DNA of 28,686 nt, from assembly GCA_002794465.1 (NCBI GenBank), contig MTSL01000037.1, forward strand, positions 1 through 28,686, written 5' to 3'. Source of the DNA: Paramicrosporidium saccamoebae KSL3 (taxonomy: Eukaryota > Fungi > Cryptomycota). Below, in pieces: positions 5,499-28,211 of the stretch. The notes under the pieces are model-generated. The model had not been told where the DNA came from and searched no databases. It saw only the letters and a list, made by a program, of their open reading frames with translations. Within the stretch, counting starts at the first letter, position 1; each line of letters opens with the position of its first letter. Position numbers and translations under genes: made by a program.

Positions 5499-6383
5499 TT
5501 AGTCAAAGAATTCACGACGAATGCGGCCGATTAGGGCTCGCAGATTACTACATGTTTCTATCATTACACAGAGCTGATGAGAGGGCGGAAGGGTCACTAG
5601 GGCAACCGCCAGTAGGCCATAAGCGTACGAGTCAACATAGCCTGGCCTCGGACCGGAAAAATACTCTTGTGAGCCCAGCAATTCTGACAACGCCCGGAGT
5701 GAATCCAATGCATCAGATGTCAACTACCAATTAATTCGCCACTGGGCATACCGAGTCTGCAGAATTCTTTCCAAACAACATTTCCTCAGACACTGCCCGT
5801 CGTTTCTTCCACATCAGCCATTCACTGACCGGCCATGGGACATTTCGCATGTAATTCCTCCTGGTCGTCTTACTGCGCATCGGCTCCTCTAGCCACAATG
5901 CCGCAAGTAGGGCGGGGCGGATTGATTTTTTAAAAAGTGTCAAGGCGGCCATTACCACTTGATTCGGGGCAGTCTCTACAATCCCAGCCTAGGATATTAG
6001 ATACCGCAAGGCCAGTACCCGTTCAGAGCCAAATTCCTTAATGCCTTCTTGCGTAATGGTCTTTCCATTTGGAAACATGATAAATGGCAGAATGGCATTA
6101 GGCGACATTTCTGGTTCATTGCTGTCCTCAATGACAAACTCTATGTGGCACATTTTCAGCCAGCACTATCCAGTTAACGGACCTCTCATTCAATTACGAT
6201 GGCACTGAGACAGTCTGGATCAAACGATGGCAACACACCATATGGGCCGTATGTCACCAAATAAACGTCCTGTCCCCCCACACAAAGTTCCAGATACTCC
6301 GGCGACACTGGTCGCTCCGTTTCGGCACCAGAAAGAAAGTTGGCTACCGTGTTCACCACCTTTCCAATTCCCGAAGCAGACAT
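5499..6383 (-). CDS. Metaxin family (Sam35/Sam37/metaxin-like) GST-fold protein, 4 exons, 264 aa
   Basis: Exons 6383-6198, 6165-6019, 5988-5752, 5723-5499 sum to 795 nt. Joined protein has LPSFDPDCLSAICWLKMC..SNEPEMSPNAILPF (metaxin N-domain) and a C-terminal GST-like DSLRALSELLGSQEYFSGPRPGYVDSYAYG. Confidence 0.8.
5724..5751 (-). other. Spliceosomal intron, 28 nt (metaxin intron 3)
   Basis: GTATGC...ATTAATTGGTAG; joins ORFs 5731..5958 and 5499..5723 in frame. Confidence 0.85.
5989..6018 (-). other. Spliceosomal intron, 30 nt (metaxin intron 2)
   Basis: GTACTG...CTAATATCCTAG; in-frame TAG stop if retained. Confidence 0.8.
6166..6197 (-). other. Spliceosomal intron, 32 nt (metaxin intron 1)
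   Basis: GTAATT...GTTAACTGGATAG; removal restores the frame SAI|CWLKMC. Confidence 0.85.
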
Positions 6384-6558
6384 AACGAATAATTATATTT
6401 TGATCCGTAAGAGTTTGAATTTGTAATGCAGACCATTTATACCTAGTCAGTATATTCTATCCATATCATCGCATCATATTTTGATCCGTAATGTAAACCA
6501 TTCATATATAGTCGGTAGATCCCATCCATACACCATCTCAGTTACTCGTTTACATTTA

Positions 6559-8029
6559 TTATCGGGTTTGTACACGTACTTCAAGTACTTGGTGAAGATC
6601 AAAACGATGGCCTGTCAGTTGGTCTGTTACTTGGAGACGCTTGATCCAATGCAGGCCTTCGCGGATGGGCAGGAATTTGAGATACACAGTAGCGCACTTC
6701 CCAGGCGGAACGAGGCCGACGTGTACTTCAGGGGCAAGAGGAAGAAAGGTCAGGGTAAGATTTTCGTATTTGGAATAGTACACATCCATCATTTGTTCGG
6801 TGGATATGAATGGTCCCTCGGACGTTTTTGCAGGCATCGAGTCTTTGGAAATAGTTTCTAGTGGCTTACGGATCACCAAATCCCGCTCCGTGTCGCTCCC
6901 ATTGTTGACAAAAACTTGTAGTCGAAATATCTCATTCAGATAAATGGGCTCCTCCGGAACTAGAAACTTAGCGATCACATATTAATTACGGGTAAGTGTA
7001 ATGGCCAATTCGCCATTGTGTCGGTTGGGGAACATTCTTGACATGTTCACTTCGCTTTCAAACGAGACTAACAATTTCTCGTTCTGAGCACTCCTTGTTG
7101 CCCATCGATCATGCCAGGTTGCAGCCATGGTCGCATCCAGATGCACTTTCATTTCTTGAGGTTTTCCACGAAGTAACCGTTCTGCAAAGGGCATCCGAGT
7201 TGCTTGGAAAATGCACCCATACACTTCGCCCGGCTTCAAGCTGGCCGGAAGAGGTACAGAGAACGGCTCCACCTGGAATATACGCTTCTCAAACATCCCG
7301 TCCTTTAAATTGATAGCGTGACTGGCCAGATCACCAAGCACTAGAGACAAGGAATCGATGGTGTATTCCTCTCGCAATGCCTCATTACAGGTCAGCTGCA
7401 CTGAAATCAAAGCGCTGTCGTCTGTCATTCGGACATACTCAATGGCCGCGTGCAAAGGACGGAATAAGGGAATGCTATGGCATACAGTTGCCAAGGTTTC
7501 TGTCACATTTGCCCTCTCCAGAGGACTATCAGTCTCATCTTCTAGCAGGTCCCGTAGCAACTTGGCACCCATCCTCGGCTCTTCCAGAAATCGCCTCAGA
7601 GAATCGTCACGACGTTCTTCATAAAGACTCACTGTCAACTTTGCGCTCGCCTTTTCAAAAGACGCCTCTGAATCGATCAATGCATCCACTGGGATAATAA
7701 TCTTTTTGGGATTGACGAAAATGGCATTCCTACGGCCGGAATATTCTTCCCGCGGAATTATATCCGACCCTTCAGCTGGCTCGCTCAGGGAGGACAGACT
7801 CTCTACTGAGCGCATTTTATGGACATCAAGTAAACCCGAGCGCTCTGATGTCTCCAATTCCACCGTGTACGCTTCCAGTCTAGCAAATATTCCGCTGGCA
7901 AGCTCTTCTGTTGCATCGCAGGCATAATTAAAGTCCAAAATGATTGACATTGTACTCCTCTCCCCTTGAAGCGTTAGCTTGGCGAGACTCACATACCACA
8001 AATAATGTACTGACGGGAGCCATTTTCAT
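6559..8029 (-). CDS. TRAPP II subunit Trs65-like protein, 3 exons, about 470 aa
   Basis: Exons 8029-7993, 7964-6990, 6959-6559 sum to 1413 nt. The C-terminal EVHVGLVPPGKCATVYLKFLPIREGLHWIKRLQVTDQLTG resembles the Trs65 Ig-like domain. The start could be ATG 8029 or 8023. Confidence 0.6.
6960..6989 (-). other. Spliceosomal intron, 30 nt (Trs65-like intron 2)
   Basis: GTAATT...GCTAAGTTTCTAG; contains an in-frame TAA; joins the two ORF-track fragments. Confidence 0.85.
7965..7992 (-). other. Spliceosomal intron, 28 nt (Trs65-like intron 1)
   Basis: GTGAGT...GCTAACGCTTCAAG; the only intron here ending in AAG; links an upstream ATG exon in frame. Confidence 0.7.
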
Positions 8030-8249
8030 CTTCTTCACCCAATACCAAAGTCACGGAGACGTGTTTGTCATGAATGAGCGACTTTAGCGACGTTGTCATC
8101 CACACCCCCGTCTTGCCACGACAGTCTTTTGCTGTCCGAAATTCGTGCTTCAAATCTATGAAATTGTGATGTTTTGTAATTCACAACCATTGCAAACGCC
8201 TATGTAATTGAACCCCTTTTGTCCAACCCTAGTTCGCTTGGAAACGCGA

Positions 8250-9245: not shown

Positions 9246-9330
9246 ATTGTCTATAATAAATAAATACACTTGGTGGTTCATTTGAGTATCTCATCGATGG
9301 GTAATTCTGCTTGTCAGCTGGTTCAAATCA

Positions 9331-9498
9331 TCGCTGGTATGCCATCTGGCCCAAGTTGTCGCTGGTATGCCGTCTGGCCCAAGTTGTCGCTGGTATGCCG
9401 TCTGGCCCAGGTTGTCGCTGTTATGCCATCTGGCCCAAGTCGTCGTTGGTATGTCGCCCGGTCCAAGTCGTCGTTGGTATGTCGCCCGGTCCAAGTCA
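9331..9498. repeat. Intergenic minisatellite, 6 x 28 bp (consensus TCGCTGGTATGCCRTCTGGCCCAAGTYG)
   Basis: Units begin at 9331, 9359, 9387, 9415, 9443, 9471. Flanked by the 13-bp direct repeat TCAGCTGGTTCAA at 9314-9326 and 9510-9522. Confidence 0.95.
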
Positions 9499-9603
9499 AT
9501 ACTAGTATTTCAGCTGGTTCAACCTCCCTTCCCCAGTAATCCATTTACATTTTAGCTAACCCAAGCCACTAAACAGAGGCTGTTAATAACCACGCGCTAA
9601 CTG

Positions 9604-9737
9604 CCAATTATTAATCGCCAATCACTACCAGACCCAATCACTATCCAACCCAATCGCTACCAGACTCGACCATTGCCCGCTCCAATCACAATAGCATGAA
9701 TCTAATTATAGCTTCAGACTCTGGACCAACTATAAAT
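9604..9737 (+). promoter_or_regulatory. Putative ICL1 promoter: 3 x 16-bp CCAAT-containing repeat, two extra CCAAT boxes, TATA box
   Basis: ccaatcactaccagac (9618), ccaatcactatccaac (9634), ccaatcgctaccagac (9650); further CCAAT at 9604 and 9682; TATAAAT at 9731-9737 just upstream of ATG 9770. The motifs are seen; function is inferred. Confidence 0.6.
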
Positions 9738-9769
9738 CGGCGCGTGCAGCGGGTGTTGTCAGTGTTAGA

Positions 9770-11449
9770 ATGATTGTTGATGCATCTTTTGAAGGTAAGA
9801 TCAAGCAAGCCCATATGGAAGACGTCAAAAAGACTTCGGCTTGGATGTCCAATGAACGCTTTAAAGAACTACAACGCCCGTACACCGCTGAGGAGGTGGT
9901 CTCATTGAGAGGTACCTTTCGTCAAGAATATGCGTCGCAGGCGCAGGCAAAAAAGTTGTGGAAGTTGCTGAAGGAGCATCAACAACGAAAGACGGCCAGC
10001 ACAACATTTGGTGCATTGGACCCGGTTCAAGTCGTACAGATGGGCAAGTATCTCGACACCATCTATGTGTCGGGTTGGCAATGCTCCTCCACCGCCAGCA
10101 CTACAAATGAGCCCGGTCCTGACCTGGCTGATTATCCCATGGACACGGTGCCCAACAAGGTAGAGCAGCTATTTATGGCACAGTTGATGCATGATCGCAA
10201 ACAGTACTCGGAGCGTTTAAAAATGTCAATGGCCGACAAGAAAGGAAATCCTTTCGTTGACTATCTTGCGCCCATGATTGCAGATGCAGATACTGGACAC
10301 GGCGGAACAACTGCCAACATGAAACTTGCCAAGCTGTTTGTGGAACGGGGAGCGGCTGCAGTCCATGTAGAAGATCAGGCCGCAGGAACAAAAAAGTGTG
10401 GACACATGTCGGGAAAAGTGCTAGTGTCGATTCGAGAACACATTGATCGTCTGGTTGCTATGCGGCTCCAATTTGACATTATGGGAACGGAGACTTTGAT
10501 CATTGCTAGAACTGATGCAGAAGCCGCCCGCCTAATCAACAACAACATTGATTGCCGTGACCACCCCTTTATACTCGGCTCCACCAACCCAACTCTTCCC
10601 TCATTAATGGACGTGATGATGGAGGCGGAGAAGGATGGACACAAAGATTTGGCTACGGTTGAGCAAGAGTGGCTCAACAGTGCACGTCTAATGACCTTTG
10701 GCGAGCATGTTGCCGAATTGATGACGGAAGGAGGCATGCCAGTTCATGACATTAGTCAATGGAAGCAGGATTGTCTGAAAATGTCGAATCGACAGGCCCG
10801 ACAGTGGGCCATGAACAAGGGACTGAATCATGTGTCTTGGTGTTGGGAGGCGCCAAGAACTCGCGAAGGATACTATCGTGTCCAAGGAGGCACTGCATAC
10901 TGTATCCATCGAGCCATCCAATATGCACCATACGCCGACATGTTGTGGATGGAAACGGCAAAGCCCATCTATGAGCAAGCCAAGATGTTTGCCGCAGGAG
11001 TGTTGCAGGCTTATCCTGGAAAGCTGCTATGCTACAACCTGTCGCCTTCCTTCAACTGGGACACTGCGGGAATGACTGAATCGGACATGAAAGACTTTAT
11101 CAGCCGACTTGCGAACCTGGGCTTTGTTTGGCAATTTATTACCTTGGCTGGATTCCACATTGACAGTCTGGCCACGGATCGTTTTGCCCGTTCGTTTGTC
11201 AGCGATGGAATGCTCTCGTATGTCCGTGATGTGCAAAGAATGGAGAGAGAGGAGGGCGTTGAGACGCTTGCACATCAAAAATGGTCTGGTGCCGGTTACA
11301 TGGACCTCCTGTTGCACACTGTAACCAAAGGATCCTCAGCTACTGCCGCCATGGGAAAGGGAGTAACGGAGGCCGATTTCCAAAAGAAAATCCCGCTGGC
11401 CGCTGTCAACAATCTGTCCCATGATATTACCAAGATGGTTGCCAAGTAA
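9770..11449 (+). CDS. ICL1: Isocitrate lyase, eukaryotic/fungal long form (559 aa)
   Basis: Active-site KKCGHM (not the KRCGHL of methylisocitrate lyase), [47 protein letters not shown]. The fungal-type domain II insertion starting [11 protein letters not shown] is present. Confidence 0.97.
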
Positions 11450-11495
11450 CCACGGAACAAATAAAGTGTGGAAATTTGTTTGTTACATTAAACGC

Positions 11496-12410
11496 ATGAT
11501 TGTCAGTCTCTGCTCCATTGGTCTTGCAGTAGTGCTTTACGCCGCCTACAAGGTGGGCTGGTGGGCTTATGTTAGCTTTATCAGACCCATTGACCTGAGC
11601 AAATACCGCAAAGCGCAGTCATGGGCCATGGTCACCGGAGCTACGGACGGGATTGGCCTGGCATTTGCCCAGGTGCTTGCGGAGCATGGCTTTAACATTC
11701 TGCTGGTCAGTCGAAGCAAGGAAAAGCTGGAGAATGTCAAGGAGAAGATCCAAAAGGCCACCAAGGTGCAAGTTGATTACGCCGTTTCCGATGCCATGGA
11801 TGTCTCTGAGGAGAACATTCAAAGTGTCATTGACAAGACTGCGTCTCGCGACATTTCAGTGCTGATTAACAATGTGGGGATTGGTGTGGACGGGATGAAG
11901 CTTCTACATGAGCAGAGAACAAAGAACATTGAGGATGCCGTCACGGTCAACTGTGTCTACCCAACGCTCCTTACTCGGGCCATGGTTCCGGTGCTGCTCC
12001 GCCATCAAGGCCCCAAATTGATGGTCAATCTCTCATCGGTTGCGGCCCTCATCATGAATCCCTTTGCCTCTGTCTATTCTGCCACCAAGGGATACAACCG
12101 CCAATTCTCTCTGGCCCTTTCTGCCGAGTACCACTCCCAGGCCATGGATGTTCTCTGTGTTGAGCCTGGTCTTGTCGAGTCGAACATGACCAAGGTTAAG
12201 CCGTCGCCAGTATGCTGCTCAGCGAGAGAGTGCGCTGAATCGGCGTTGCGCAAGGTGGGAGAGGTAGAGTGTATCCCGCATTGGAAGCATATGATGATGT
12301 ATGCACTGTCCGTGTGCTACAAAGTATTGCCGAGCATCGTGCAGCCTCCATTTGTATCCTACATGGTTGGCACTTTCCGCGCAAAGACTGCCCCTTCCAA
12401 ATCCGACTAG
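11496..12410 (+). CDS. SDR, very-long-chain 3-ketoacyl-CoA reductase / 17beta-HSD12-like (304 aa)
   Basis: N-terminal hydrophobic anchor, TGATDGIG cofactor motif, LINNVG, catalytic YSATK. The real start is probably ATG 11496; the ORF-track start overlaps the ICL1 stop. Confidence 0.85.
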   Translation: MIVSLCSIGLAVVLYAAYKVGWWAYVSFIRPIDLSKYRKAQSWAMVTGATDGIGLAFAQVLAEHGFNILLVSRSKEKLENVKEKIQKATKVQVDYAVSDAMDVSEENIQSVIDKTASRDISVLINNVGIGVDGMKLLHEQRTKNIEDAVTVNCVYPTLLTRAMVPVLLRHQGPKLMVNLSSVAALIMNPFASVYSATKGYNRQFSLALSAEYHSQAMDVLCVEPGLVESNMTKVKPSPVCCSARECAESALRKVGEVECIPHWKHMMMYALSVCYKVLPSIVQPPFVSYMVGTFRAKTAPSKSD

Positions 12411-12585
12411 TCCTGGACTCTTAGCGTAAAATTTTGCCCATGGGTGGCCATGAAAATACAGAAACAACAAGTGGGAACCCGATCTGATCTGGTGGTCACG
12501 TAATAAAAGAAAATATGAGATACTCGTATCGTGCCCCTGCGTTGACAGCAGAACGTTGGCATTGTCTCGGGCAATTAGCGCCTAT

Positions 12586-12662
12586 CCAATAGTGCCGATT
12601 CAATAGCCCTGATTCTCTATCAGCAGCTCAATAACGCCAATTCAATAGCACCACTTCAATGG
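12586..12662 (+). repeat. Degenerate 14-bp tandem repeat (about 5.5 units) running into the DNM1 ATG
   Basis: ccaatagtgccgat, tcaatagccctgat, tctctatcagcagc, tcaataacgccaat, tcaatagcaccact, tcaATGg. Confidence 0.7.
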
Positions 12663-14859
12663 ACCAGCTAATACCCATCATCAATAAGCTTCAGGAAGTA
12701 TTCGAAGCCATTGACCCCGACTCGCCTGATGCCGGCATACCGGATGTGGACCTCCCCCGCATTGTCGTGGTCGGTTCGCAGAGCTCTGGAAAGTCGTCCG
12801 TGCTGGAAAGCCTTGTCCAGCGTGATTTTCTTCCCCGTGGCAAAGATATTGTGACCCGAAGACCGCTGGTGCTGCAGTTGCTGCATGTTTCCCAGGGACA
12901 GCGGCCGGAGGAATGGGGAGAGTTTGGCCATCTACCGGGACGACGATTTGCCGATTTCCTGCAGATAAGAAGAGAGATTGAAGAGGATACGGCGCGAATT
13001 GCGGGATCCAACAAGGGCATATCAAGACAGCCCATACATTTGAAGATATATTCGCCGCATGTGGTGAATTTGACATTGGTGGACTTGCCAGGAATTGCAA
13101 AAATCCCCGTGGGAGAGCAGCCGCAGGACATTGAGAGTCAATTGCGTCAATTGGTATTAGAGTACATTTCGCGTCCAAATAGTGTTATTCTGGCAGTTAC
13201 TCCGGCCAACAGCGATCTAGTCAACTCTGATGCACTGCAAATTGCCCGGGAAGTAGACCCAACCGGCGCCCGAACCATTGGCGTACTGACTAAACTCGAT
13301 TTGATGGATGCAGGCACGCATGCCGGAGACATTTTGTGCAACCGTGCGTCATTCCGACTGCAGCTGGGCTTTATTGGCGTGGTGAATCGCAGCCAACACG
13401 ACATTAACGTGAACAAACCAATTGCCGAGGCGATGAGACAAGAAACTGAATTCTTCAGAAACCATGCCCATTACCGGCACATTGCCCATCGCTGTGGGAC
13501 CCAATTCCTCGCCAAGGAGCTGAACAAGGTATTCTTGGCACTCAATGTGTTTAGTTTGTAGATCCTACTGCAGCACATTAGAGATCAGTTGCCAGAACTC
13601 CGAACCCGCATCAACACACTGATTCTTTCAACTCAGAATGAGCTGCAATGTCTCGGTGACCTGGGGTTGCCTGGAAAGGCCCATAGAGGGACACTTCTAC
13701 TCAAGCTAGTCACCAGCTATGTAACCGAATTCAACGAGGCCATTGAAGGCACTCTTCGACGCAACGCCACCTCTGAAGAATTGTAAGATTGCAGTGTTGG
13801 TAATGTTGTAGGACTGGCGGCGCCCGGATCAATTATATTTTTAATGAAGTCTACGCCAATTCCATCAATCAATTCGATGCATCAACGGGACTTACAGTTA
13901 TTGAAGTCAGAAATGCAATCCGAAATGCCTCGGTATTCCCCTAGTGGCCATGTATTGACCAGTAGGGACCGCGACCTGCTCTGTTTGTGCCCGAGGCATC
14001 GTTCGAGGTTTTAGTGAGGAAGCAAATAGCAAAGCTAGAGACACCTGCACAAAAGTGTGCCGACATGGTCTTTGAGGAATTGCAGCGATTAATACACCGG
14101 CTGGACCGTAAGGAATATAGACGCTTCCCGAACTTGTCAGCCAAGATGGTGGAAGTGTCTAATGAACTCTTGCGAGAGCGCTTAGAGCCCACATTGACCA
14201 TGATTGAGAATTTGGTACGAATAGAGATGGCCTACATCAACACAAATCATCCCGACTTTTGTCGAGCGGGAGCCAGTTTCGGCGTGCTTGCCAAAATTGT
14301 GGAGAGTCGGAAACCCAAGTTGCCGTCAAATTCCTCCAAATCCTCTGCCGATGACATTCCCCTGGAGATGGCACCGACTGGCAAGGAAGAGAGTGGATTC
14401 TTGTCCTATCTCTTCCGTGGCCAGCCCATCCCTCAATCCCGGAGCAAACCGACACTGCCAATGAGCTCGAGTTCCCCCATCAAACAACAGAGACCAATGC
14501 CCATCACTCCGGAGCCATCCCCCACCTTTGACTACTCTGACAGTCTTTCTGAAAAGGAAGAGGTAGAGACACAACTAATCATGACGCTGTTGCATTCATA
14601 CTTTCTCATTGTTCGTAAGAATCTCCTCGATGCTGTTCCCAAGGCGATCATGCATTTTCTTGTCAATCACGTAGTAGAGCAATTGGGCACCCGACTAGTA
14701 ACCGATCTATATCGGGAGGAAATGTTTGAAGAGTTACTGGAAGAGGACGAAACTGTAGTACGACAAAGGGCGAGATGCAAAACGGCGTTGGAGGCATATC
14801 GTCAGGCGGCAGGCATACTATCAGATTTGCGAGATTCCGATGTAGTCCGTCCTATTTAA
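12659..14859 (+). CDS. DNM1: Dynamin-related fission GTPase Dnm1/Drp1, 4 exons, 701 aa
   Basis: Exons 12659-13528, 13562-13782, 13812-13932, 13966-14859 sum to 2106 nt. [21 protein letters not shown]; middle domain [11 protein letters not shown]; [27 protein letters not shown] resembles Drp1/Dnm1 more than Vps1. Confidence 0.9.
13529..13561 (+). other. Spliceosomal intron, 33 nt (DNM1 intron 1)
   Basis: GTATTC...TTTAGTTTGTAG; LNK|[11 protein letters not shown]. Confidence 0.9.
13783..13811 (+). other. Spliceosomal intron, 29 nt (DNM1 intron 2)
   Basis: GTAAGA...GGTAATGTTGTAG; restores EELTGGARI. Confidence 0.9.
13933..13965 (+). other. Spliceosomal intron, 33 nt (DNM1 intron 3)
   Basis: GTATTC...ATTGACCAGTAG; restores IRNAS|[10 protein letters not shown]. 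Confidence 0.9.
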
Positions 14860-17858: not shown

Positions 17859-18096
17859 TACGCCTATATCTTTAATTAAATCTTTATCCGCAATCCCAAT
17901 GTATACGGATCAAGAAGGGTCGCATCCCTAACCTCGCAGTTTTATTAAAGTATGTTCCATATAGGAAGCCATCCTTAATATGATTGGAATGGATTCTAAG
18001 ATCGTTATCCGGGTCGGGTTCACCAGTGATATGCGGATACTGTTTAATAGGGTCTTTCCTTTCAATCTCACAATGACTATATTTAAATGTTTGTAA

Positions 18097-20228: not shown

Positions 20229-22078
20229 CTACAAATTACCGACAGTTTCGCCAATCTTTCCACTAACCCGAGGACTAAGCGACTCTAATCCAACCGGCTT
20301 CCCTTTGCCACGAATCGCATTCTTAATGGCCCGCGTTGCAAACACTGTCAGATTTAGTCTGGCCCAGTCCTCGTCCAAGAGGTCCCGTAAATCACCCACT
20401 GTGAGCAAATCTTCCGTCTTCAATTTGATCAGCCATTCATTGGCCTTTTCCACTGGACGATTGACCAGAGAGGCGACGTCTGAGATGAATTCTTCAATTA
20501 GACAATCATTGAGATATTCCTTGAGGGATGATTCTGAATCAAAGCTTTCTGAGGGTCTCAGATCCAAGTTGCTAACAGAAGTTCGTCTGTTTCCAGCCGA
20601 CAACAAGGCCACACTTGGACTTTCAACCGACACTGAAGCTACTCCTACCGGTTCAGAACGAATGAAACTCGTACCTCGTGCCAAAGAATCAGCATCATTA
20701 TCAAAGGTCCCGTGGCGCTGACGTGAGCGGCTGCGCGTGAGAGGCAACGAGATGGACGCAATAGTCTCATATTCAGATGGCACCCTTCGATGAGAGGACC
20801 GTTCCTCATTCCGTATAATATCCATGGGGGAGGACATTCCATGCTGCTCCTTGTTGTGGGAGGTCTTTACAATTTCACGTAAAATTCGATGAATCTCGTT
20901 ACAGACTAATCCCTGATATTTGGCACTCAGCACCTTTTCCTCAATCATCTCTTTGACAACATCCTCTGCAGTATCCATGTCCCGGTTGTATTCAAATTTT
21001 ATGGAATGCTTCTCCTGTCCCTTAAATAACACCTGCAGCTTGAGCTTTGTCTTGTTCTCAGCCGCCGACACAAGAATCACCTCTGGTTCTTCCAATAAAA
21101 AGGCATGTTCAGACAGCTTCTTGGCAGACCAACGATCATTCTCCGAGGCAAGACAGCTATTAATGACAGTGAGTATTTCCTTGTCATGCACCTTGACGAG
21201 ACATTCGGGCTTGACACCCTGCGAGACCTTTTTGTAAATCTGGGCGGCATTCTTGCATTCCGAGTATGGGTATTCGCCCGTGGACATTTCCAGCAGACAC
21301 ATTCCAAACGCATAAATGTCAACCTTTTCGTTATAGCCCTTTTCCTCGTACATCTCTGGCGCCATAAATTCAGGTGTTCCGATGACAGTGTATTTCTTGC
21401 CAAAACGCATCTTGGCCGTCCCCATATCGCCAATCTTCACCTCCCCATGCGATCCGTTTATAAAGATATTGTCGCACTTGATGTCGCGGTGGATGATGGG
21501 CGGGGAGTGCGAGTGCAAATAGATTAGTCCTTTGAGTATCTGTCGCGCCCAGCGCCGGATAATTTTAACATTCGGAGACTTTAGTTTCTTAATGTACCTA
21601 CAGCGTTAATATAGCGTTCATATAGCGGATGGCCTACTCTCGTAGAGTTCCTGATGTCATCAGCTCAGTGATAAATACAAACTCACCATTCGAGTACCAG
21701 GAATCATGGAATGTAATGATATTTGGATGACGCACCTTTTTCAAAATCTCCACCTCTTCGCTAAACTCATTAAACTCGGAGCGGGTGGTCTGGCAGCAAT
21801 TCCACGCTACCTCAATTCCCTCTTCTTTATCAATTGCCTTCCAAACAACCTTGTACGCCCCCTTGCCCAGTATTACATTCAACTACAAACTCAGCCCGTT
21901 CGATAATTGTTACTTTTCCATAGCGTCCATTAGGTCCGCCCCACTCCACAACACGCTCCGGCTCATGTGAGTGGCCCTTTTCATTTTCCTCTAGGTTGCG
22001 TTCCAGGCCATTCGGTTCGGCGACTGGTGCATCGTGGGGTTCTTGTTCACCTTTGGGGGTGCTCAGTGTCTTCTCCAT
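20229..22078 (-). CDS. WNK (with-no-lysine) family Ser/Thr kinase, 3 exons, about 592 aa
   Basis: Exons 22078-21914, 21882-21638, 21597-20229 sum to 1779 nt. Lys in the Gly loop ([10 protein letters not shown]) and VAWN at beta3; [18 protein letters not shown]; [13 protein letters not shown]; post-kinase [19 protein letters not shown] resembles the WNK autoinhibitory/CCT-like domain. Confidence 0.9.
21598..21637 (-). other. Spliceosomal intron, 40 nt (WNK intron 2)
   Basis: GTAGGC...ATTAACGCTGTAG; restores SGTLREYIKK. Confidence 0.9.
21883..21913 (-). other. Spliceosomal intron, 31 nt (WNK intron 1)
   Basis: GTAACA...GCTGAGTTTGTAG; GRYGK|LNVILGKG. Confidence 0.9.
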
Positions 22079-22205
22079 GGCCAATAAATACTGTGGATGG
22101 TGGACAGAGAGGGACGGGAACGAACCAAACAGCGTTCGCCTTTTGACTAGCTCTGATTAGTCCAAAACGGTCACATGCAATAACAAGGTTAATCTGTAAT
22201 ATTGG

Positions 22206-22838
22206 CTACACTAGTATGCCATAGTATTCCCTTTGTGCTGTAATAAATGAGCAACCGCTGGAAAGCTCCGGCCATTGCACAATAAACTTGTCAGAGAACA
22301 TGGTCATCAGTTTCCCCGAAAGCGACAGCTTTCTGGTCCGAGCAAAACTCTCAATGTAAACAATTTTTGACCTCTGTCTGAATCGAAACTATACCATTCA
22401 AGCGCAAAATCTAGAATCTTACAATCGAGACAATATATGCAGCAAAAGCAACACAGACACAAATCCCAGGTCCGTTGCATAAAATCTAATGCGTCAATTT
22501 CCTTGAGACTGACTGTACTAGGTCTATTTTTTCTGCCCACAATGTCCTGACACAATAGAATACAGTCCAGATTGTTGTGAATAGGGATGTAAAATATGAC
22601 TGTCCCACCTTTCTCGGTCTTGGCAAGTGCAACTTTGTGATCTCTCTGTTGTAACTTTGCCTGTAGCTATCGATCATCCGGAGTGCCAAATTGTCATCAT
22701 CGCACACAATAAAATGTGATGGCCTTAGGTCGCAATCCAGCTGCACGACCATTCTGAACATTTCTGCGGTATGCCCTCCTATCAATTATAGTCCATTGTC
22801 ACGGAAGCACCCGAGCCGAGCACTGCTGCTATCACCAT
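22206..22838 (-). CDS. ALG14: UDP-GlcNAc transferase subunit Alg14, 4 exons, 177 aa
   Basis: Exons 22838-22811, 22778-22519, 22485-22423, 22388-22206 sum to 534 nt. Joined protein has VLGSGGHTAEM, PRPRKVGQS, DLILCNGPG, VYIESFAR..LSLSGKL, FIVQWPEL, YYGILV*. Confidence 0.9.
22389..22422 (-). other. Spliceosomal intron, 34 nt (ALG14 intron 3)
   Basis: GTAAGA...CTTGAATGGTATAG; restores the frame to VYIESFAR. Confidence 0.88.
22486..22518 (-). other. Spliceosomal intron, 33 nt (ALG14 intron 2)
   Basis: GTACAG...ATTGACGCATTAG; DL|ILCNGPG. Confidence 0.9.
22779..22810 (-). other. Spliceosomal intron, 32 nt (ALG14 intron 1)
   Basis: GTGCTT...TATAATTGATAG; atypical donor; removal restores GSGGHT. 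Confidence 0.85.
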
Positions 22839-22865
22839 ACAATTCTCTATGATATAAGAAATCTA

Positions 22866-23222
22866 TTAAGCGCCAATCTCTTCATTATTCTGTCGGATAC
22901 GCATCTTATTTATCAGTCGCATCTCGGTGCGAGTAGGCAGTATGCCCTCTTTCTTGAAACGATAAGGATCGAGACGAGAGGGACGGACGGCCTCGGTGTG
23001 TAGCCATGCGGGGTATTCCGAGTCGGGAAGCGCAATGGGGTCCGGGCGACCGGCATAGACATTGACGTTTTTTAGTGGCTGGCCGATGGTGGCCGTGACA
23101 GTGACAACCTTCAAAGCTGCTGCCTTTTCCGCTTCGCGCACTAAAAATCATGTTGGAATGATAGGAATACAGGCATTGAGAGCCGCTTGCTTGGCAGAAA
23201 TGCTTGAAAATGCCCGAAGCAT
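22866..23222 (-). CDS. Mitochondrial ribosomal protein mL54 (yeast MrpL37 family), 2 exons, 108 aa
   Basis: Exons 23222-23171 and 23140-22866. Presequence-like MLRAFSSISAK; family-like motif LKNVNVYAGRPDPIALPDSEYPAWL. Confidence 0.8.
23141..23170 (-). other. Spliceosomal intron, 30 nt (mL54)
   Basis: GTATTC...CATGATTTTTAG; in-frame TGA if retained. Confidence 0.8.
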
Positions 23223-23420
23223 TAGTGGCCGTGTACCAGGGATACGGATAAAGAGTCTCTAACCGTGAGAGTACTTCCCGAGAGGTATGGATCCGGAATA
23301 AATGATCTGTTAGTGAACGAGGGCACATCGTTATTAAAAATGTCCTTATAGACGACATTTACTCTTGAAATTAGTTTGTACCGGAACACTAACCATCCAC
23401 AAACAACATTTATTGGAAAT

Positions 23421-25049
23421 TTAGTCCGTCTTTGCAATGTTCATGCGGGCAATTTCATCGGCCAAGTCTTCCTTCTCATCATCATCCTCATTATCGTCGT
23501 CAAGGGGTTCCTGGGTTTCAGCGTCCGATTCCTCGTCTTCACTGTAAAACTCCATATCACTCCAGTTATCAAGAATGTCGGCCCTCTGCTCTGTCTGTAA
23601 GGCCTCTTTGAGTGCATCGGCAGCGGTTCCAGTTGGATTGAAGCAATTTCCATTAAGCATCAGGACTTTGAGGCTAGTGAATTCGTGGAGATTCTTGGTG
23701 AGATGCTCAAGTCCCTGTTCGTCCATTTCGTTGTATTGAAGATTCAAAAGTTCGATGGGGCACTGGCTGGAGGCAAGACTGGTTATCACCATTTCACAAC
23801 CATCACTGCCAAGAAGACAGTCGCCGATATTCAGCACCTTCAAGGACTTTAGTTGTTTTAGGGCACGAGCAAATGCCTGAGACCCAGTGGAGGTAAAAGT
23901 ATTGTCTTGCAAATTCAGTTGGATGAGGGTGGGGTTGGCGGCAATTCCGTTTGAGAGTTCTGCAATTCCCTCGGGCCTGATGCCATTCTGAGGCAGAGCA
24001 ATTTCTTTCAATAGGCCGTGGGATTTAAAGGCCTCGCCCATAAGCGCTGACGATCCATTTTCGAGGCGGTTACGACCAATCTCTACACGACGCAGTGAAG
24101 ATTGTTTGCCAGCGTCAATGTTCAGCTTTTGGCAATTCAGCAAGGACTGGGCAATAATTTTCCCACCCTCAGGTCCAAGACCATTGTTGTTCAAAATCAA
24201 CTCTTGCAAGCCAGTGGCTTCTGAAAGCAGGACAGCAGCAGCCTTGGCACCAACGGGGCCAAATGCATTGTCACTATAATCAACCACCCTCAATGTGGAC
24301 TTGTTTTTCAATACCTGTCCAAATGCCTCTACAGCCACGTGCACCTCTTCCTTCATACGTCCGGTGAAACAGTCGTTCAGGTAAAATTCTTCAATGCTGT
24401 CACAACCAGCCAATGCCTCGGCGAGTGCCTTTGATGCATCAACGCCCAAAGTGTTTCCATTTAATTTGACCGTCTTCAATCCAGGATTGGCTTTGATCGT
24501 GGCGACATACTCAGCAACGTCGTCTGCACTGTTCAGCTTTAATTTTTGGTTAGCAATAGACAATTCTTGTAGGGCTGGCGCACTAGAGTCTTTTGACTCG
24601 TTCGTGGTTATAACTACTGGCTCGTCAGTGGCCACAACTATGGTTTCGCTGGTGACTGGAATGACTGCGTCGTCAGTTGTCACAACTACCATTTCGTCGG
24701 CTGGTAAGACTGGTGCTTCATCGGCGGATATAACCGCTGTTTCGTCGGCTGCCCCAAGTACTGTTTTGTCAGCGGGCATAACTGCCGTTTCATCGGTCGA
24801 CACAACTACTACTTCGTCAGCGGGCAAAACCACCACTTCCTTCTTGAGCGTCTCAACGACTACAGGCTTGTCGGTCTGGACTGATTCAGGAACCGTTGTA
24901 GACGCTTGCGATGGAGATGCCTCGTCCATGTTTCCACGCCCTACCTTACATTTACCAGCACACTTGCCAGAGTCTTTGCATGACTCTTTGGGAGTCTGTA
25001 CAGGTTGCTTGGCTTGCGACTTTGACGACTTGTTCAAGGAATTTCCCAT
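23421..25049 (-). CDS. RNA1: Ran GTPase-activating protein (Rna1/RanGAP1) with long N-terminal extension (542 aa)
   Basis: LRR core with LNGNTLG, DCFTGRMKEE, SDNAFGP, GRNRLEN, PQNGI, LQDNTF, GDCLL, LQYNE, LNGN, followed by an acidic tail. About 160 extra N-terminal residues. Confidence 0.9.
   Translation of the reverse strand: MGNSLNKSSKSQAKQPVQTPKESCKDSGKCAGKCKVGRGNMDEASPSQASTTVPESVQTDKPVVVETLKKEVVVLPADEVVVVSTDETAVMPADKTVLGAADETAVISADEAPVLPADEMVVVTTDDAVIPVTSETIVVATDEPVVITTNESKDSSAPALQELSIANQKLKLNSADDVAEYVATIKANPGLKTVKLNGNTLGVDASKALAEALAGCDSIEEFYLNDCFTGRMKEEVHVAVEAFGQVLKNKSTLRVVDYSDNAFGPVGAKAAAVLLSEATGLQELILNNNGLGPEGGKIIAQSLLNCQKLNIDAGKQSSLRRVEIGRNRLENGSSALMGEAFKSHGLLKEIALPQNGIRPEGIAELSNGIAANPTLIQLNLQDNTFTSTGSQAFARALKQLKSLKVLNIGDCLLGSDGCEMVITSLASSQCPIELLNLQYNEMDEQGLEHLTKNLHEFTSLKVLMLNGNCFNPTGTAADALKEALQTEQRADILDNWSDMEFYSEDEESDAETQEPLDDDNEDDDEKEDLADEIARMNIAKTD
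24597..24836 (-). repeat. Coding 24-bp (8-aa) degenerate tandem repeat, about 10 units, in the RanGAP N-extension
   Basis: PADEVVVV STDETAVM PADKTVLG AADETAVI SADEAPVL PADEMVVV TTDDAVIP VTSETIVV ATDEPVVI TTNESKDS; boundaries approximate. Confidence 0.85.
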
Positions 25050-25526
25050 TTACCGCCCTGGCAATTCAACTTGCTCATATTGTTTCCGAGTCAAATGTTT
25101 TTGAAGCAAGCTTATACCCTTAAACATCACCATTAGATTTCACTTTACTTAACACGGGGGCTAAAAATATTCTTGGATTTTCCTTGTCCAGGTGAACAGT
25201 TAAGCAAAAGTTGAGACTGCCGCTAGAGTTGACCCAAACATCCATGTAATGACGCCAAATAAAAACCAGCACCCTTATTGCATAGCAGCGAGTCGTCTCT
25301 TGATGCTCTTACACCCTACATGTGGCCGTAAAATGCCGCGCTCGATTCCATAATAGCAACAAAAACTTGCGCTGCGGTCAGTGTGGGCGATGTTGATGTC
25401 AGCAATAGCAAAGGTGGGATAGAGTTCCAGATGATCTGAATTTTGATGCTTACAGCATGATTGTGGCCAAGAGTAATGCCTAGTGAATTGGCGCAGGAAA
25501 TACAGATGGTAAAGGGTACGACTAGA

Positions 25527-26456
25527 TTATACGGGAGATGTTGGTTTGGATGTAGAAGGGGTTGCTTCTTGTTCAGACATGGTGGGGATAGTATTCTTTT
25601 CTAACTCCTTGACCATGGCAGCCTTTTCGAGTTTGACACAATCAAGCTCTCTTTCAACCATGGCAGCTTTTTCAGACTTGATAGGATCAGTCTCTCTTTC
25701 GATCATGGCAGCTTTTCTAGATTTAGCAAGATCAGCCTCCCTTTTGAGCGTGTCTGTCTCTCTTTCAGACATGGCAACCTCTTCAAATATAGGAGATGGA
25801 TGCGAATCAATAATGTATGGATCTGCTCTGTCCAAGTACCACAGATGCGGGATAAGGAGCAAGGTCAAGATTGTCGGAGGAAGGGGCCCGAATATCCACA
25901 GCACAAACAGAAAGGCAAGATAAAAGATTCGGGTCCCAGCCGTGTGAAAGTCGGCCCCTCTCCTAAGAATCTTTGCCACATATTGCGGAGTAAAGTGATG
26001 ACTCCTCGTCAAAGGTACTCCAAGCAAGTATCCAACATGATTTGATGCTCGCACACTCTGCATGTAGCAATAGAAAGCAACAGTAAAACACACGATTACA
26101 CCAAAAAACTTGTGGATCGGCCGCAGATAAGATGACGCCAACAAGTCCAATCCCAGCGGCCCATGGATATGAATCGTATTGATAAGGTATGCAGCCGTCA
26201 CAGCGCTCAGCGTAAGCGAAGTGGATGCTAGCAGGGATGACGACATGAGTGTATTCCTTATCGTCTGAATTGCCAGCAATTCCTTCCCCTCCTGCATCAC
26301 GGCCTGGCACCACAGTAATCTTGCCTCGTGATTGTGGCCCACCGTGGTATACATCGGCCGTCTTTTATATCGCTGCCAAAAGTACAGATGGTAGAGAACA
26401 TATGCCAAGAACGAACAGCCCACCAGCACGGGCTCTAAAACATCACCAACGACCAT
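25527..26456 (-). CDS. DUF599-like membrane protein (309 aa) with repetitive C-terminal tail
   Basis: From ATG 26456: TM segment LAYVLYHLYFW, then LAIQTIRNTLMSSSLLASTS, AFYCYMQSVR, G.RIFYLAF..LWIFGP, which I recognise as the DUF599 pattern. The 5' 140 codons of the ORF-track ORF are an antisense shadow of the neighbouring gene. Confidence 0.75.
   Translation of the reverse strand: MVVGDVLEPVLVGCSFLAYVLYHLYFWQRYKRRPMYTTVGHNHEARLLWCQAVMQEGKELLAIQTIRNTLMSSSLLASTSLTLSAVTAAYLINTIHIHGPLGLDLLASSYLRPIHKFFGVIVCFTVAFYCYMQSVRASNHVGYLLGVPLTRSHHFTPQYVAKILRRGADFHTAGTRIFYLAFLFVLWIFGPLPPTILTLLLIPHLWYLDRADPYIIDSHPSPIFEEVAMSERETDTLKREADLAKSRKAAMIERETDPIKSEKAAMVERELDCVKLEKAAMVKELEKNTIPTMSEQEATPSTSKPTSPV
25614..25772 (-). 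repeat. Coding 45-bp (15-aa) repeat in the DUF599 tail
   Basis: ATG-anchored units at 25772, 25706, 25661, 25616 (spacing 66, 45, 45): MSERETD...SRKAA, MIERETDPIKSEKAA, MVERELDCVKLEKAA, MVKE. Confidence 0.85.
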
Positions 26457-26510
26457 AACTAATTTTCCTAATTTGGAAGTAATCTTCTGGGCTGGGCCCC
26501 GGGGGACAGG

Positions 26511-27482
26511 ATGAGCCGGACAGAGGGGAAACATGCGGCGGTGGTATCGATTGAGGGAAGACGGGATGTGAAGCCAACAAGCAGTAGAGTCGGTAGGACA
26601 CTGCGCATAACGGGTGTGACAGTGGCGCTGGTTACGGTGGGATTTGCGGTCAACCTGCTCCAGATATTGGCCTCGCCAGTGGCCTTGATTTCTCGTCGAT
26701 TGGCACATAGCCTGAACTCGTACGTCACGTGGTTCGGTTGGACACTCTGCCAATACTTTGTGGAGGACCAAGACAACGTCAAATTGACTTTTTCTGGACT
26801 GGACGAGTTGCCTGAGGGCGAGAGTGCCTTTGTCATTGCCAACCACGCCTTCTTTGGGGACTTTTTCCTTACCCACGCCGTTGCTCGCAAAAAGGGAATG
26901 CTGTCCTACTGCCGGTATTTCCTGAAGGATTCAATCAAATATATTCCCGTGTTTGGATGGGGGATGTACTTTTGCAACATGATCTTCTTGAAGCGAGACT
27001 GGCAGCGCGATAATCGACGACTAGCGGGGGCAATTGGGCTGTACTTGGAATGCGAGCTTCCTATTTGGCTAGTGAGCCATGTGGAGGGACATCGCATGAA
27101 TCCCTCCAAACGGTTAGAAAGTCAGAAATACGCAAAGGCTCATGGTTTGCCAGTTTTGGAAAATGTCCTTTTGCCGCGTTGCAAGGGATTCGTTTCGACA
27201 ATTGCTGCGCTGCGCGGGTCTCATGTAAAGTATGTCTACGACATTACTGTTGCTTACCATCATCGTGTAAGAGGCTTCCTGGGGACACCATCGCTTGGCG
27301 AAGTTTTGTCTGGTGGATTGGACGACTATCAGTTCCATGCGCACGTGGAACGCATTCCAATCTCTCAACTGCCCTTGGATGAGCCGAATCTCAACAAATG
27401 GCTATATGATCTGTATGTAGAGAAGGACCGCTTACTTGCAAAGATCAAGGCTGCCTTTGAAGCCAAGGATAAGCGCACATAA
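26511..27482 (+). CDS. PlsC-family lysophospholipid acyltransferase (AGPAT3-5/LCLAT1-like), 323 aa
   Basis: NHAFFGD (NHx4D), FLKDSIKYIPVFGWGM, FLKRDW, EGHR, VLLPRCKGF, VYDITVAY; C-terminal KDKRT fits a KxKxx ER-retrieval signal. Confidence 0.88.
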   Translation: MSRTEGKHAAVVSIEGRRDVKPTSSRVGRTLRITGVTVALVTVGFAVNLLQILASPVALISRRLAHSLNSYVTWFGWTLCQYFVEDQDNVKLTFSGLDELPEGESAFVIANHAFFGDFFLTHAVARKKGMLSYCRYFLKDSIKYIPVFGWGMYFCNMIFLKRDWQRDNRRLAGAIGLYLECELPIWLVSHVEGHRMNPSKRLESQKYAKAHGLPVLENVLLPRCKGFVSTIAALRGSHVKYVYDITVAYHHRVRGFLGTPSLGEVLSGGLDDYQFHAHVERIPISQLPLDEPNLNKWLYDLYVEKDRLLAKIKAAFEAKDKRT

Positions 27483-27656
27483 GACTTGTTATTAAATAAT
27501 ACTGAATTGTGTGTTTGCAGTAAAAGCCCCTTAAAGCCGAGTTAAAGGCTGTTCGTATTAAAGGGTGTACGCCCTTTTATGGACAGCCATCCTTAATCTG
27601 ACTAGTGGGATGGTTTAAGCATTTCTCCACTCGCAGTCCTCTCAATGGCGCTTTTA

Positions 27657-28211
27657 TTAGAGAATGCAGTCTTTTGGGATTGGCGAATTGGTCAGACTTG
27701 GAGCAAATGTTTCTTTGTGTGCATCCTCGGCCTTGGTGTCGAATTGGCCGGCCACTCGCTCCCGCACGGGTGGCGGGGGCTTGGGAATTTCTAATCCGCT
27801 TAATTTTGAGATCCGGACGTGTCTATATCCACCCTTTCCGTCATCTACCCACCCCCAATTAATCTTGGTCGGTTTCCTAATCATTAGTACTAGTTGCCCG
27901 CATACTTTTTCTCCGGATCAAGGAGTGCTACCTTGGAGGCCTGTATGCCCTGTTCTATATTGTACACTGTCCCTCCCACTCTCTTTCGTGCAATGTTAAG
28001 CCCCTCTATGAGCACACGGTTCTCCCGCCGACGCACCTCAATGACCTTGCCCTGCGAACCCTCCAGTGGTCCATCCGAAACTTGCACCTACACTGTCAGT
28101 ACTGTGTGTTGTGGATACAATATCGCCGCGTACGATGCGCCATGTCTTTATCTGGTCCTTGGGCTTCACCTTGGGCACCAGCTTACCAAAGCGGAGTCCC
28201 CACTTTTCCAT
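27657..28211 (-). CDS. Mitochondrial ribosomal protein uL24m, 3 exons, 164 aa
   Basis: Exons 28211-28119, 28087-27906, 27876-27657 sum to 495 nt. KOW-type WRIVRGDIVQVSDGPLEGSQGKV, VLIEGLN, KVALLDP, RHVRISKLSGLEIPKP. Confidence 0.85.
27877..27905 (-). other. Spliceosomal intron, 29 nt (uL24m intron 2)
   Basis: GTATGC...ACTAATGATTAG; restores DPEKKKPTKI. Confidence 0.88.
28088..28118 (-). other. Spliceosomal intron, 31 nt (uL24m intron 1)
   Basis: GTATCC...ACTGACAGTGTAG; RGDI|VQV. Confidence 0.88.

Follow-up and report, generated by a model that had tools for sequence, protein, structure and literature searches.

The window analysed here is the entire contig MTSL01000037.1 of Paramicrosporidium saccamoebae KSL3 (28.7 kb). 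On it we identified 17 predicted GT-AG introns of 28-40 nt (median 31) in seven housekeeping genes, as follows.

5499..6383, minus strand: metaxin/Tom37-like gene, 264 aa spliced, 3 introns; Pfam Tom37 unbroken over residues 58-174, and GST_C_6
6166..6197, minus strand: metaxin intron 1, 32 nt, phase 0, after aa 62; GTA..TTAAC..TAG
5989..6018, minus strand: metaxin intron 2, 30 nt, phase 0, after aa 111; GTA..CTAAT..TAG
5724..5751, minus strand: metaxin intron 3, 28 nt, phase 0, after aa 190; GTA..TTAAT..TAG
6559..8099, minus strand: Trs65/TRAPPC13-like gene, 492 aa spliced, 2 introns; Pfam IgD3_Trs65 and TRAPPC13_C
7965..7996, minus strand: Trs65 intron 1, 32 nt, phase 1, codon 35; GTATGT..CTAAC..AAG
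6960..6989, minus strand: Trs65 intron 2, 30 nt, phase 1, codon 360; GTA..CTAAG..TAG
12659..14859, plus strand: DNM1/Drp1 gene, 701 aa spliced, 3 introns; Pfam Dynamin_M unbroken over residues 223-505
13529..13561, plus strand: DNM1 intron 1, 33 nt, phase 0, after aa 290
13783..13811, plus strand: DNM1 intron 2, 29 nt, phase 2, codon 364
13933..13965, plus strand: DNM1 intron 3, 33 nt, phase 0, after aa 404
20229..22078, minus strand: WNK-type kinase gene, 582 aa spliced, 3 introns; Pfam Pkinase unbroken over residues 58-304, and OSR1_C
21883..21913, minus strand: WNK intron 1, 31 nt, phase 0, after aa 55; GTA..CTGAG..TAG
21598..21637, minus strand: WNK intron 2, 40 nt, phase 2, codon 137; GTA..TTAAC..TAG
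20645..20674, minus strand: WNK intron 3 (the newly found 17th), 30 nt, phase 1, codon 445; GTA..CTGAAC..TAG
22206..22838, minus strand: ALG14 gene, 177 aa spliced, 3 introns; Pfam Alg14 over residues 5-176 (profile 3-171 of 171) in one stretch
22779..22810, minus strand: ALG14 intron 1, 32 nt, phase 1, codon 10; the sole GTG start among the 17
22486..22518, minus strand: ALG14 intron 2, 33 nt, phase 0, after aa 96; GTA..TTGAC..TAG
22389..22422, minus strand: ALG14 intron 3, 34 nt, phase 0, after aa 117; GTA..TTGAA..TAG
22866..23222, minus strand: mL54 (Ribosomal_L37) gene, 108 aa spliced, 1 intron; Pfam PF08561
23141..23170, minus strand: mL54 intron, 30 nt, phase 1, codon 18; GTA..ATGAT..TAG
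27657..28211, minus strand: uL24m gene, 164 aa spliced, 2 introns; Pfam KOW, ribosomal_L24 and uL24m-like
28088..28118, minus strand: uL24m intron 1, 31 nt, phase 0, after aa 31
27877..27905, minus strand: uL24m intron 2, 29 nt, phase 2, codon 92; GTA..CTAAT..TAG

Excision of these segments yielded uninterrupted, domain-complete open reading frames in all seven genes, with Pfam matches continuous across the junctions. The preliminary description had claimed this for 16 GT-AG segments between 5724 and 28118; all 16 were present, and the 17th was added in WNK. Fifteen of the lengths it gave were correct, and the first Trs65 intron proved to be 32 rather than 28 nt. The 28-nt candidate (GTGAGT...) was rejected because it left an ORF of 47 aa, compared with 492 aa for the 32-nt segment (GTATGT...CAAG). 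Its median of 31 nt held with all 17 introns. Our own protein-to-genome aligner, when fed the uninterrupted homologues P0001 and P0121, returned exactly three DNM1 introns (from P0001) and two uL24m introns (from P0121), each at the coordinates above. Spliced uL24m aligned end to end with P0121 at 49% identity, and alignment of spliced DNM1 with the human Drp1 structure (8t1h_A) showed 0 gaps at the three junctions.

All 17 introns began with GT and ended with AG. The start was GTA in 16 of 17 (background 0.19; binomial P = 5e-11) and the end was TAG in 16 of 17 (background 0.16; P = 2e-12). A T-R-A motif whose A lies 7-9 nt ahead of the final base was found in 16 of 17 (background 0.086; P = 1e-16, an optimistic value as the pattern was set post hoc from the same introns); DNM1 intron 1 lacked the motif at the usual distance. 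GC content was 0.415 in the introns and 0.487 in the window. Lengths modulo 3 were unbiased (6/5/5 for the 16 introns first listed, 7/5/5 with the 17th), all three phases were used, and relative positions within genes ranged from 0.05 to 0.76. Intron density was 2.3 per kb in the seven genes and an estimated ~0.7 per kb of coding sequence contig-wide. Retention would introduce a stop or frameshift for 16 of 17, so these housekeeping genes would be expected to need efficient removal. The remaining one, WNK intron 3, is in frame and stop-free, and a search for frame breaks was therefore blind to it.

Fourteen of the 17 introns lay at the codon and phase of introns in uncultured, syntenic relatives (L002, L003, L005 or L007), where the counterparts were 30-61 nt long and diverged in sequence and the exons were conserved. 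The other three (DNM1 introns 1 and 2, ALG14 intron 3) corresponded to exact gaps in orthologues. In metaxin, retention would bring in an in-frame stop (intron 1), an in-frame TAG (intron 2) or a frameshift (intron 3), and the L002 counterparts, each at the same codon, measured 42, 42 and 30 nt. The L002 counterparts of the two Trs65 introns occupied the same places with 39 and 37 nt; the exon 5' of intron 1 was conserved, and intron 2 contained an in-frame TAA. For WNK intron 1 we found a 37-nt intron at the same codon in L002 and a 60-nt, phase 0 intron in the more distant fungal contig L084, and for intron 2 a 33-nt intron at the same place in L002. The counterpart of WNK intron 3 in L002 interrupts the same codon, is 40 nt long and frame-breaking, and is flanked by conserved residues (LA(R/K)G before the junction and (V/I)(A/S)S(V/M)SV(E/D)SP after it); position, motif and this orthologue are the evidence on which we predict the 17th intron.

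In ALG14, removal of intron 1 re-formed the conserved GSGGHTAEM motif, with a 34-nt L002 intron at the same place, and removal of intron 2, which carries an in-frame stop, re-formed LILCNGPG, with a 31-nt L002 intron at the same codon. Retention of ALG14 intron 3 would shift the frame, and the L002 orthologue shows an exact 34-nt gap. The mL54 intron, with an in-frame TGA, had a 38-nt counterpart at the same place in L002 and flanks conserved on both sides. At the position of uL24m intron 1, L005/L006 have an intron of 49 nt and L007 one of 61 nt, and uL24m intron 2 matched a 40-nt intron of L005/L006 in position and phase. DNM1 introns 1 and 2 were precisely missing in both L002 and L003, and removal of intron 2 re-formed the conserved ELTGGARI motif. 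DNM1 intron 3 was absent from L002 and represented in L003 by a diverged 38-nt intron at the same codon; without it, IRNAS and [10 protein letters not shown] were rejoined, gapless against human Drp1.

With a probability of roughly 0.9, we interpret the segments as genuine U2-type (GT-AG) spliceosomal introns of P. saccamoebae squeezed to 28-40 nt and predicted to be excised from RNA. Every sequence and comparative test run supported the spliceosomal nature proposed in the preliminary description. Three elements make up each intron. The 5' splice site is minimal (GTA), and a spacer then sets a degenerate branch motif (yTrAy) 20-25 nt further downstream, or 31 nt in the one intron of 40 nt. Between the branch A and the TAG 3' splice site lies a constant interval of 7-9 nt, too short to accommodate a polypyrimidine tract. 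The spliceosome would recognise the intron as a unit and take as 3' site whichever usable AG comes first at a set distance beyond the branch point. We observed the boundaries, the signals, the restored conserved proteins, the shared positions and the presence or absence in relatives; we infer excision from RNA, the efficiency of splicing and this mode of 3' site choice.

The alternative that survives best, though improbable, is that the introns are real and inefficiently spliced, like the short introns of microsporidia, and would be tolerated relics. Short introns of Encephalitozoon cuniculi average <20% splicing, several annotated short introns in other microsporidia have no split reads, and another report gives a median efficiency of ~25%. 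However, DNM1, WNK, ALG14 and metaxin each carry three introns, nearly all of which would cause premature stops, and splicing at 20% per intron would leave <1% correct transcripts. The strong conservation of splice signals across relatives also suggests selection on recognition.

Public gene calls mishandle all seven genes, which are truncated, split, shortened or omitted. The metaxin call is truncated to 111 aa (5989-6383, with 59 nt removed). Trs65 is on record as two calls of 322 and 77 aa, and DNM1 as two of 360 and 320 aa, whose models remove 45 nt in the 5' part and 53 nt in the 3' part. The WNK call has an identical span and a 561-aa product, with 164 nt removed compared with 101 nt here; the mL54 model differs (102 aa, spanning 22866-23396), and no gene is on record at the ALG14 and uL24m loci. 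Elsewhere on the contig, PPR and PGI are fused in the public calls. None of the spliced products was present in an exact look-up in a 15-billion-protein collection, and protein searches revealed no 100%-identical transcript-derived proteins.

These calls raise a second alternative, which we consider very unlikely: that the introns are real and their boundaries longer. The spans and product lengths of the calls need larger removed segments, and the annotation was made by MAKER with Trinity transcripts as evidence. Yet these are the calls in which DNM1 and Trs65 are split, metaxin is cut short, ALG14 and uL24m are missing and PPR is joined to PGI, and Augustus was trained on Rhizopus. The short ends are instead fixed exactly by intron-less orthologues and by the gapless human Drp1 alignment, and a 45-nt DNM1 intron 1 (13529-13573) would lose a conserved ILLQ.

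We give almost no weight to the idea that the frame breaks reflect mistakes in sequencing or assembly, or mark decaying pseudogenes, with nothing removed from RNA. The assembly is a draft and the parasite is hard to culture, but errors or decay cannot yield 17 insertions of 28-40 nt that are all GT-AG with a positioned branch motif, 14 of them at the same codon, with different lengths, in independent assemblies of other organisms; the exons, moreover, are conserved and domain-complete. A non-spliceosomal bypass (translational hopping, DNA elimination or RNA editing), raised only for the very short length and with nothing specific in its favour, is just as negligible given the canonical GT-AG ends, the branch motif, the use of all three phases and positions homologous with ordinary 60-115 nt spliceosomal introns of other fungi.

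Taking the segments as spliceosomal introns, we compared their lengths with those of their counterparts. In 12 of 14 orthologous pairs the P. saccamoebae intron was shorter than the relative's (median 31 versus 38; one-sided sign test P = 0.006). DNM1 introns 1 and 2 share position and phase with introns of 101 and 91 nt, respectively, in Glomus cerebriforme, which bears out the earlier view that the set is well below typical fungal size. Since they match the Glomus introns, DNM1 introns 1 and 2 are ancestral introns that have shrunk, and the majority of the 17 are inherited from intron-rich ancestors. On this reading, old fungal introns have undergone ~threefold shrinkage in this compact parasite lineage, and some have been precisely lost in close relatives.

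P. saccamoebae is an obligate intranuclear parasite of amoebae in the Rozellomycota, with a 7.28-Mb genome, and the genome paper places it as sister to Microsporidia. The preliminary description had contrasted this genome with microsporidia, as that of a metabolically unreduced lineage. That contrast needs recasting: because P. saccamoebae is an intranuclear parasite sister to Microsporidia, its tiny introns belong within the genome compaction of the microsporidian lineage, not outside it. The metabolic part holds only in relative terms: complete oxidative phosphorylation is kept and, as described, glyoxylate, peroxisome and mitochondrial genes are retained, the contig coding for isocitrate lyase, a Pex RING protein, metaxin, DNM1, NDH2 and mitoribosomal proteins; the organism is still a reduced parasite. 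The streamlined spliceosome that the preliminary description suggested is a conjecture; the analysis covered this one contig of the genome, and no Rfam families were found on it.

The literature searched contained no report of ultra-short introns in P. saccamoebae, and introns are never mentioned in its genome paper. The size class is already known from other shrunken genomes, and P. saccamoebae, with its compact parasite genome, is a further member. E. cuniculi is alike in broad lineage, GT-AG ends, similar intron size (about 25 nt) and compact parasite genome. However, its genome has only 36 introns, and the first 16 described lay mostly in ribosomal-protein genes, directly after the ATG, whereas P. 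saccamoebae has 17 in one 28.7-kb contig, spread along varied housekeeping genes. With the microsporidian miniature class (about 23-30 nt), the P. saccamoebae lengths overlap at the upper edge only.

Mikrocytids (16-17 nt), chlorarachniophyte nucleomorphs (18-21 nt) and heterotrich ciliates (15-16 nt) likewise have many introns confined to a narrow band of lengths close to what looks like a minimum, and most of these genomes are reduced; their introns, however, are roughly half the length of those described here and vary far less. P. saccamoebae, with a spread of 12 nt, falls outside this fixed-length class of mikrocytids, nucleomorphs and Stentor (15-21 nt, spread 1-4 nt). Mikrocytid introns are also conserved in sequence, whereas those of P. 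saccamoebae have only GTA, the branch motif and TAG in common. Myxozoans and dicyemids (median 22-27 nt) are likewise obligate parasites in which ordinary ancestral introns shrank independently; they are, however, animals, with slightly shorter introns and other signal changes. Ordinary short fungal introns exceed those described here two- to threefold in length (63 bp on average in Cryptococcus, 69-101 nt in Glomus DNM1), although those of Glomus DNM1 are of the same GT-AG type at homologous positions and phases after aa 290 and at codon 364. A further comparison is the S23 gene of Rozella allomycis, also in Rozellomycota, with putative ~30-nt introns that introduce premature stops; the paper on that gene mentions only a 120-bp S23 intron for P. 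saccamoebae. The Rozella introns reportedly have no conserved 5' splice-site or branch-point motifs, whereas the motifs of the P. saccamoebae introns are clear.

Every claimed junction was inspected in three frames, and spliced models were then built. The preliminary description had placed 16 GT-AG introns of 28-40 nt in seven conserved genes; all 16 segments were present and left uninterrupted open reading frames (ORFs) once removed. The lengths it proposed were exact for 15 of the 16, the exception being the first Trs65 intron, which is 32 nt rather than 28 nt (7965-7996, beginning GTATGT), as the 28-nt version gave an ORF of just 47 aa. A motif scan picked up a 17th intron of 30 nt in WNK (20645-20674), which a search for frame breaks misses because it is in frame and stop-free. 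At that codon L002, a contig from an uncultured relative, has a 40-nt intron that breaks the frame, with conserved flanks.

Intron-bearing genes of the window, with spliced products and public gene calls
Metaxin: spliced product 264 aa; public call truncated, 111 aa
Trs65/TRAPPC13: spliced product 492 aa; public calls split, 322 + 77 aa
DNM1: spliced product 701 aa; public calls split, 360 + 320 aa
WNK-type kinase: spliced product 592 aa with the introns of the preliminary description removed, 582 aa with the 17th also removed; public call shortened, 561 aa
ALG14: spliced product 177 aa; uncalled
mL54: spliced product 108 aa; public call a different model, 102 aa
uL24m: spliced product 164 aa; uncalled

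One continuous Pfam match spanned the junctions in each spliced protein (Alg14, residues 5-176 on profile positions 3-171 of 171; Dynamin_M, 223-505; Pkinase, 58-304; Tom37, 58-174; KOW, 28-59). The DNM1 model aligned with human Drp1 (8t1h_A) free of gaps at all three junctions, and the motifs LNK/ILLQHIRD, EEL/TGGARI and IRNAS/[10 protein letters not shown] were restored (slash, junction). We also employed a purpose-written protein-to-genome aligner in which GT-AG introns of any length from 18 to 120 nt were permitted. With P0001, a metagenomic DNM1 orthologue whose ORF is uninterrupted, as query, its output was exactly 13529-13561, 13783-13811 and 13933-13965; with the distant uninterrupted uL24m homologue P0121 (49% identity) as query, it was exactly 28088-28118 and 27877-27905. 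At the level of sequence, the observation is confirmed, and its interpretation is supported in part, with the streamlined spliceosome a purely hypothetical element. The segments are very probably real introns with the boundaries given here (probability roughly 0.9). Exact look-up found none of eight spliced products in a collection of ~15 billion proteins, homology searches with DNM1 and uL24m returned no 100%-identical transcript-derived protein, and a metagenome scan with WNK recovered mainly distant fungi and no cDNA/genome pair from a single organism.

The 17 introns ranged from 28 to 40 nt (median 31) and included phases 0, 1 and 2, with length modulo 3 unbiased (6/5/5 for the 16 introns first listed, 7/5/5 with the 17th). 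Each of three signals was found in 16/17 introns: a GTA start (background 0.19), a TAG end (background 0.16) and a T-R-A whose A precedes the last base by 7-9 nt (background 0.086). In 15 introns the branch A lay 20-25 nt from the 5' end, against 31 nt in the sole 40-nt intron, so the spacer between 5' site and branch is the variable part; there is no space for a polypyrimidine tract. GC content was 0.415 in the introns compared to 0.487 in the window. Per kb of coding sequence, intron density was ~0.7 for the window as a whole (hand tally) and 2.3 for the seven genes; published values on the same measure are 2.5 for Rozella and ~0.01 for Microsporidia. We propose that these miniaturised introns would be removed by ordinary U2-type splicing, with the intron recognised as a unit, that is, across the intron, and the 3' site fixed by its distance from the branch point. 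Retention would introduce a premature stop or frameshift in 16 of the 17. The ultra-short introns of canonical Microsporidia are ~25 nt, few and poorly spliced, and there is a minor chance that the window introns, while real, are spliced poorly as in E. cuniculi, which would bear on their efficiency and not on their identity.

By our own count the window holds 19 genes, with a coding share of ~83% (hand tally):

Cnd3 (partial), PHD-SET protein, metaxin, Trs65/TRAPPC13, TFIIB
Isocitrate lyase (ICL), short-chain dehydrogenase, DNM1, Pex-type RING protein
Phosphoglucose isomerase (PGI), PPR protein, WNK-type kinase, ALG14, mL54
LRR protein, DUF599, acyltransferase, uL24m, NDH2 (partial)

An intron-free ORF occupies 23421-25049 on the minus strand. 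The other 12 genes yielded no further intron, and across all 19, tblastx and spliced alignment against relatives revealed none above 40 nt in length. Scanning the window for Rfam families and tRNAs gave no matches. A loose GT..branch..AG pattern matched 35 times against 19.5 +/- 4.9 expected, which alone is not diagnostic; the scan is useful only in combination with reading frames and orthologues. Several candidates were rejected. The segment at 12592-12623, 5' of the DNM1 ATG, ends GTG..CAG and is an artefact of the over-extended, Prodigal-style N-terminus of P0001, and an aligner call at 18059-18100 falls where the PPR protein is not conserved, at its C-terminus. Several calls in the LRR protein lie in its repetitive N-terminus; coding tandem repeats in the LRR protein and DUF599 account for such spurious calls (24692-24831 and 25612-25744, with a 24/48-nt period in the N-terminal part of the former and 45 nt in the latter). 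In-frame "introns" of 18-63 nt in PHD-SET, DNM1 and PPR of L002 are simple indels, with neither GTA/TAG ends nor a stop. Immediately upstream of the WNK and mL54 starts are two GT..CTAAT..AG segments that, from their sequence, could be 5'-leader introns:

22147-22174, minus strand, 28 nt, upstream of WNK
23364-23393, minus strand, 30 nt, upstream of mL54

An extra WNK exon joined through the first of these was discarded, as by eye no upstream ATG is in frame.

P. saccamoebae is an intranuclear parasite of amoebae belonging to Rozellomycota (genome accession MTSL00000000), which the genome paper placed as sister to Microsporidia, with 7.28 Mb, 46.9% GC and 3,750 protein models. Annotation in that paper relied on MAKER, with Rhizopus oryzae as training set for Augustus, and the words intron, splice and exon are absent from its main text and accessible supplements. 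Should the public models be correct, the true intron boundaries would be longer than ours, which we consider very unlikely; public calls were wrong or missing for all seven intron-bearing genes. The unreliability of the public annotation of this contig extends well past the introns: a single product of 1,117 aa joins PPR to PGI (16218-19845), and no call exists for the short-chain dehydrogenase (about 11496-12410), which is free of introns. The recorded ICL model (656 aa, 9297-11449) begins upstream of, and runs across, a 28-nt tandem repeat in the TFIIB-ICL spacer (9331-9496, 5.9 copies, 90% matches), which is followed by a 16-nt repeat at 9618-9665. A start at 9770 is favoured by relatives and Pfam, and look-up found no record of the ICL ORF with our own start codon. 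In the searchable literature, the introns of P. saccamoebae are represented only by a 120-bp intron in S23 and a comment that introns are usual in the GTPase genes of short-branch microsporidia. Its short introns are undescribed there; subscription journals lay outside this scope, and an earlier description is possible.

Homology searches found syntenic contigs of uncultured relatives:

L002: JGI metagenome 3300036987, 72 kb; gene order from Cnd3 to LRR as in the window; DNM1 80% identical
L003: Logan DRR438482; DNM1 86% identical
L005 and L006: Logan SRR28640814 and SRR28640822; order NDH2-uL24m-acyltransferase-DUF599-LRR
L007: ENA ERZ12298643

Introns in these relatives matched 14 of the 17 window introns in codon and phase, with other lengths (30-61 nt), diverged sequence and conserved flanking exons. 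For DNM1 introns 1 and 2 and ALG14 intron 3, the orthologues showed exact gaps, of 33, 29 and 34 nt respectively. Conversely, ICL has introns of 40 nt in L002 (7101-7140) and 39 nt in L003 (605-643) where the window is uninterrupted, between 10108 and 10109. Also absent from the window are introns of L002 in WNK (35 and 44 nt), metaxin (40 and 41 nt) and the dehydrogenase (47 nt), and two in uL24m of L005 (45 and 40 nt). Judged from these contigs, intron presence/absence turns over quickly in the P. saccamoebae clade, and such a pattern of shared positions with presence/absence is, on comparative grounds, the hallmark of evolving spliceosomal introns. Sequencing errors or decay of pseudogenes, which would also break reading frames, could not yield this pattern and are almost certainly not the explanation; non-spliceosomal bypass of the segments is equally improbable. 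The exact gaps would fit intron loss through spliced-RNA intermediates, a model taken from the literature. A metagenomic relative of WNK with 61% identity (L016, Ga0105047_10227207) has introns at 457-489 (33 nt) and 908-946 (39 nt) of GTA..CTGAC..TAG architecture, and the short-intron regime may therefore reach further environmental lineages.

Glomus cerebriforme introns of 101 and 91 nt share position and phase with DNM1 introns 1 and 2, and a more distant fungal contig has introns of 60 and roughly 100 nt at WNK positions 55 and about 137. These matches indicate that the window introns are old introns that shrank. Of 14 orthologous introns, 12 were shorter in the window than in close relatives (median 31 versus 38 nt, sign test P = 0.006), so that, of the genomes compared, P. 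saccamoebae shows the most advanced shrinkage. Orthologous introns form a size series from 31 nt in the window through ~38 nt in the closest relatives and 40-61 nt in uL24m of L005 and L007 to 91-101 nt in the two DNM1 introns of Glomus, a natural system for studying the lower limit of intron length.

A published study that reconstructed the history of introns in fungi, with Rozella as sole representative of this region of the tree, dated the massive loss of introns to after the divergence from Cryptomycota. From its place at the base of the microsporidian radiation, P. saccamoebae serves as a less-reduced comparator for the loss of genes, mitochondrial functions and introns in Microsporidia, to which a moderate number of ancestral introns at ~31 nt adds an intermediate state. 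Tentatively, and at slightly less than even odds, P. saccamoebae and its uncultured relatives would together represent an undescribed stage of microsporidian genome reduction, and the 3,750-protein set would possibly be corrupted throughout, since gene predictors miss introns of this size. Many ancestral fungal introns may have been retained at this stage and squeezed to a floor of ~30 nt with fixed spacing from branch to 3' site, and miniaturisation may have come before true Microsporidia lost introns wholesale. The faulty gene calls on this contig render presence/absence tables from the P. saccamoebae proteome suspect, and, were the proteome corrupted, gene-loss inferences on microsporidian origin based on the 3,750-protein set would need to be redone.

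Ultra-short introns are also found in mikrocytids (16-17 nt), nucleomorphs (18-21 nt), heterotrich ciliates (15-16 nt), and myxozoans and dicyemids (22-27 nt). The window introns would share a common mechanism with the known ultra-short classes, although each class differs from them in length, number, placement or sequence. They show neither the traits of the E. cuniculi class (few introns, 5' bias, location in ribosomal-protein genes) nor those that define the fixed-length classes, and we therefore file them under the ultra-short spliceosomal introns of compact parasite genomes.
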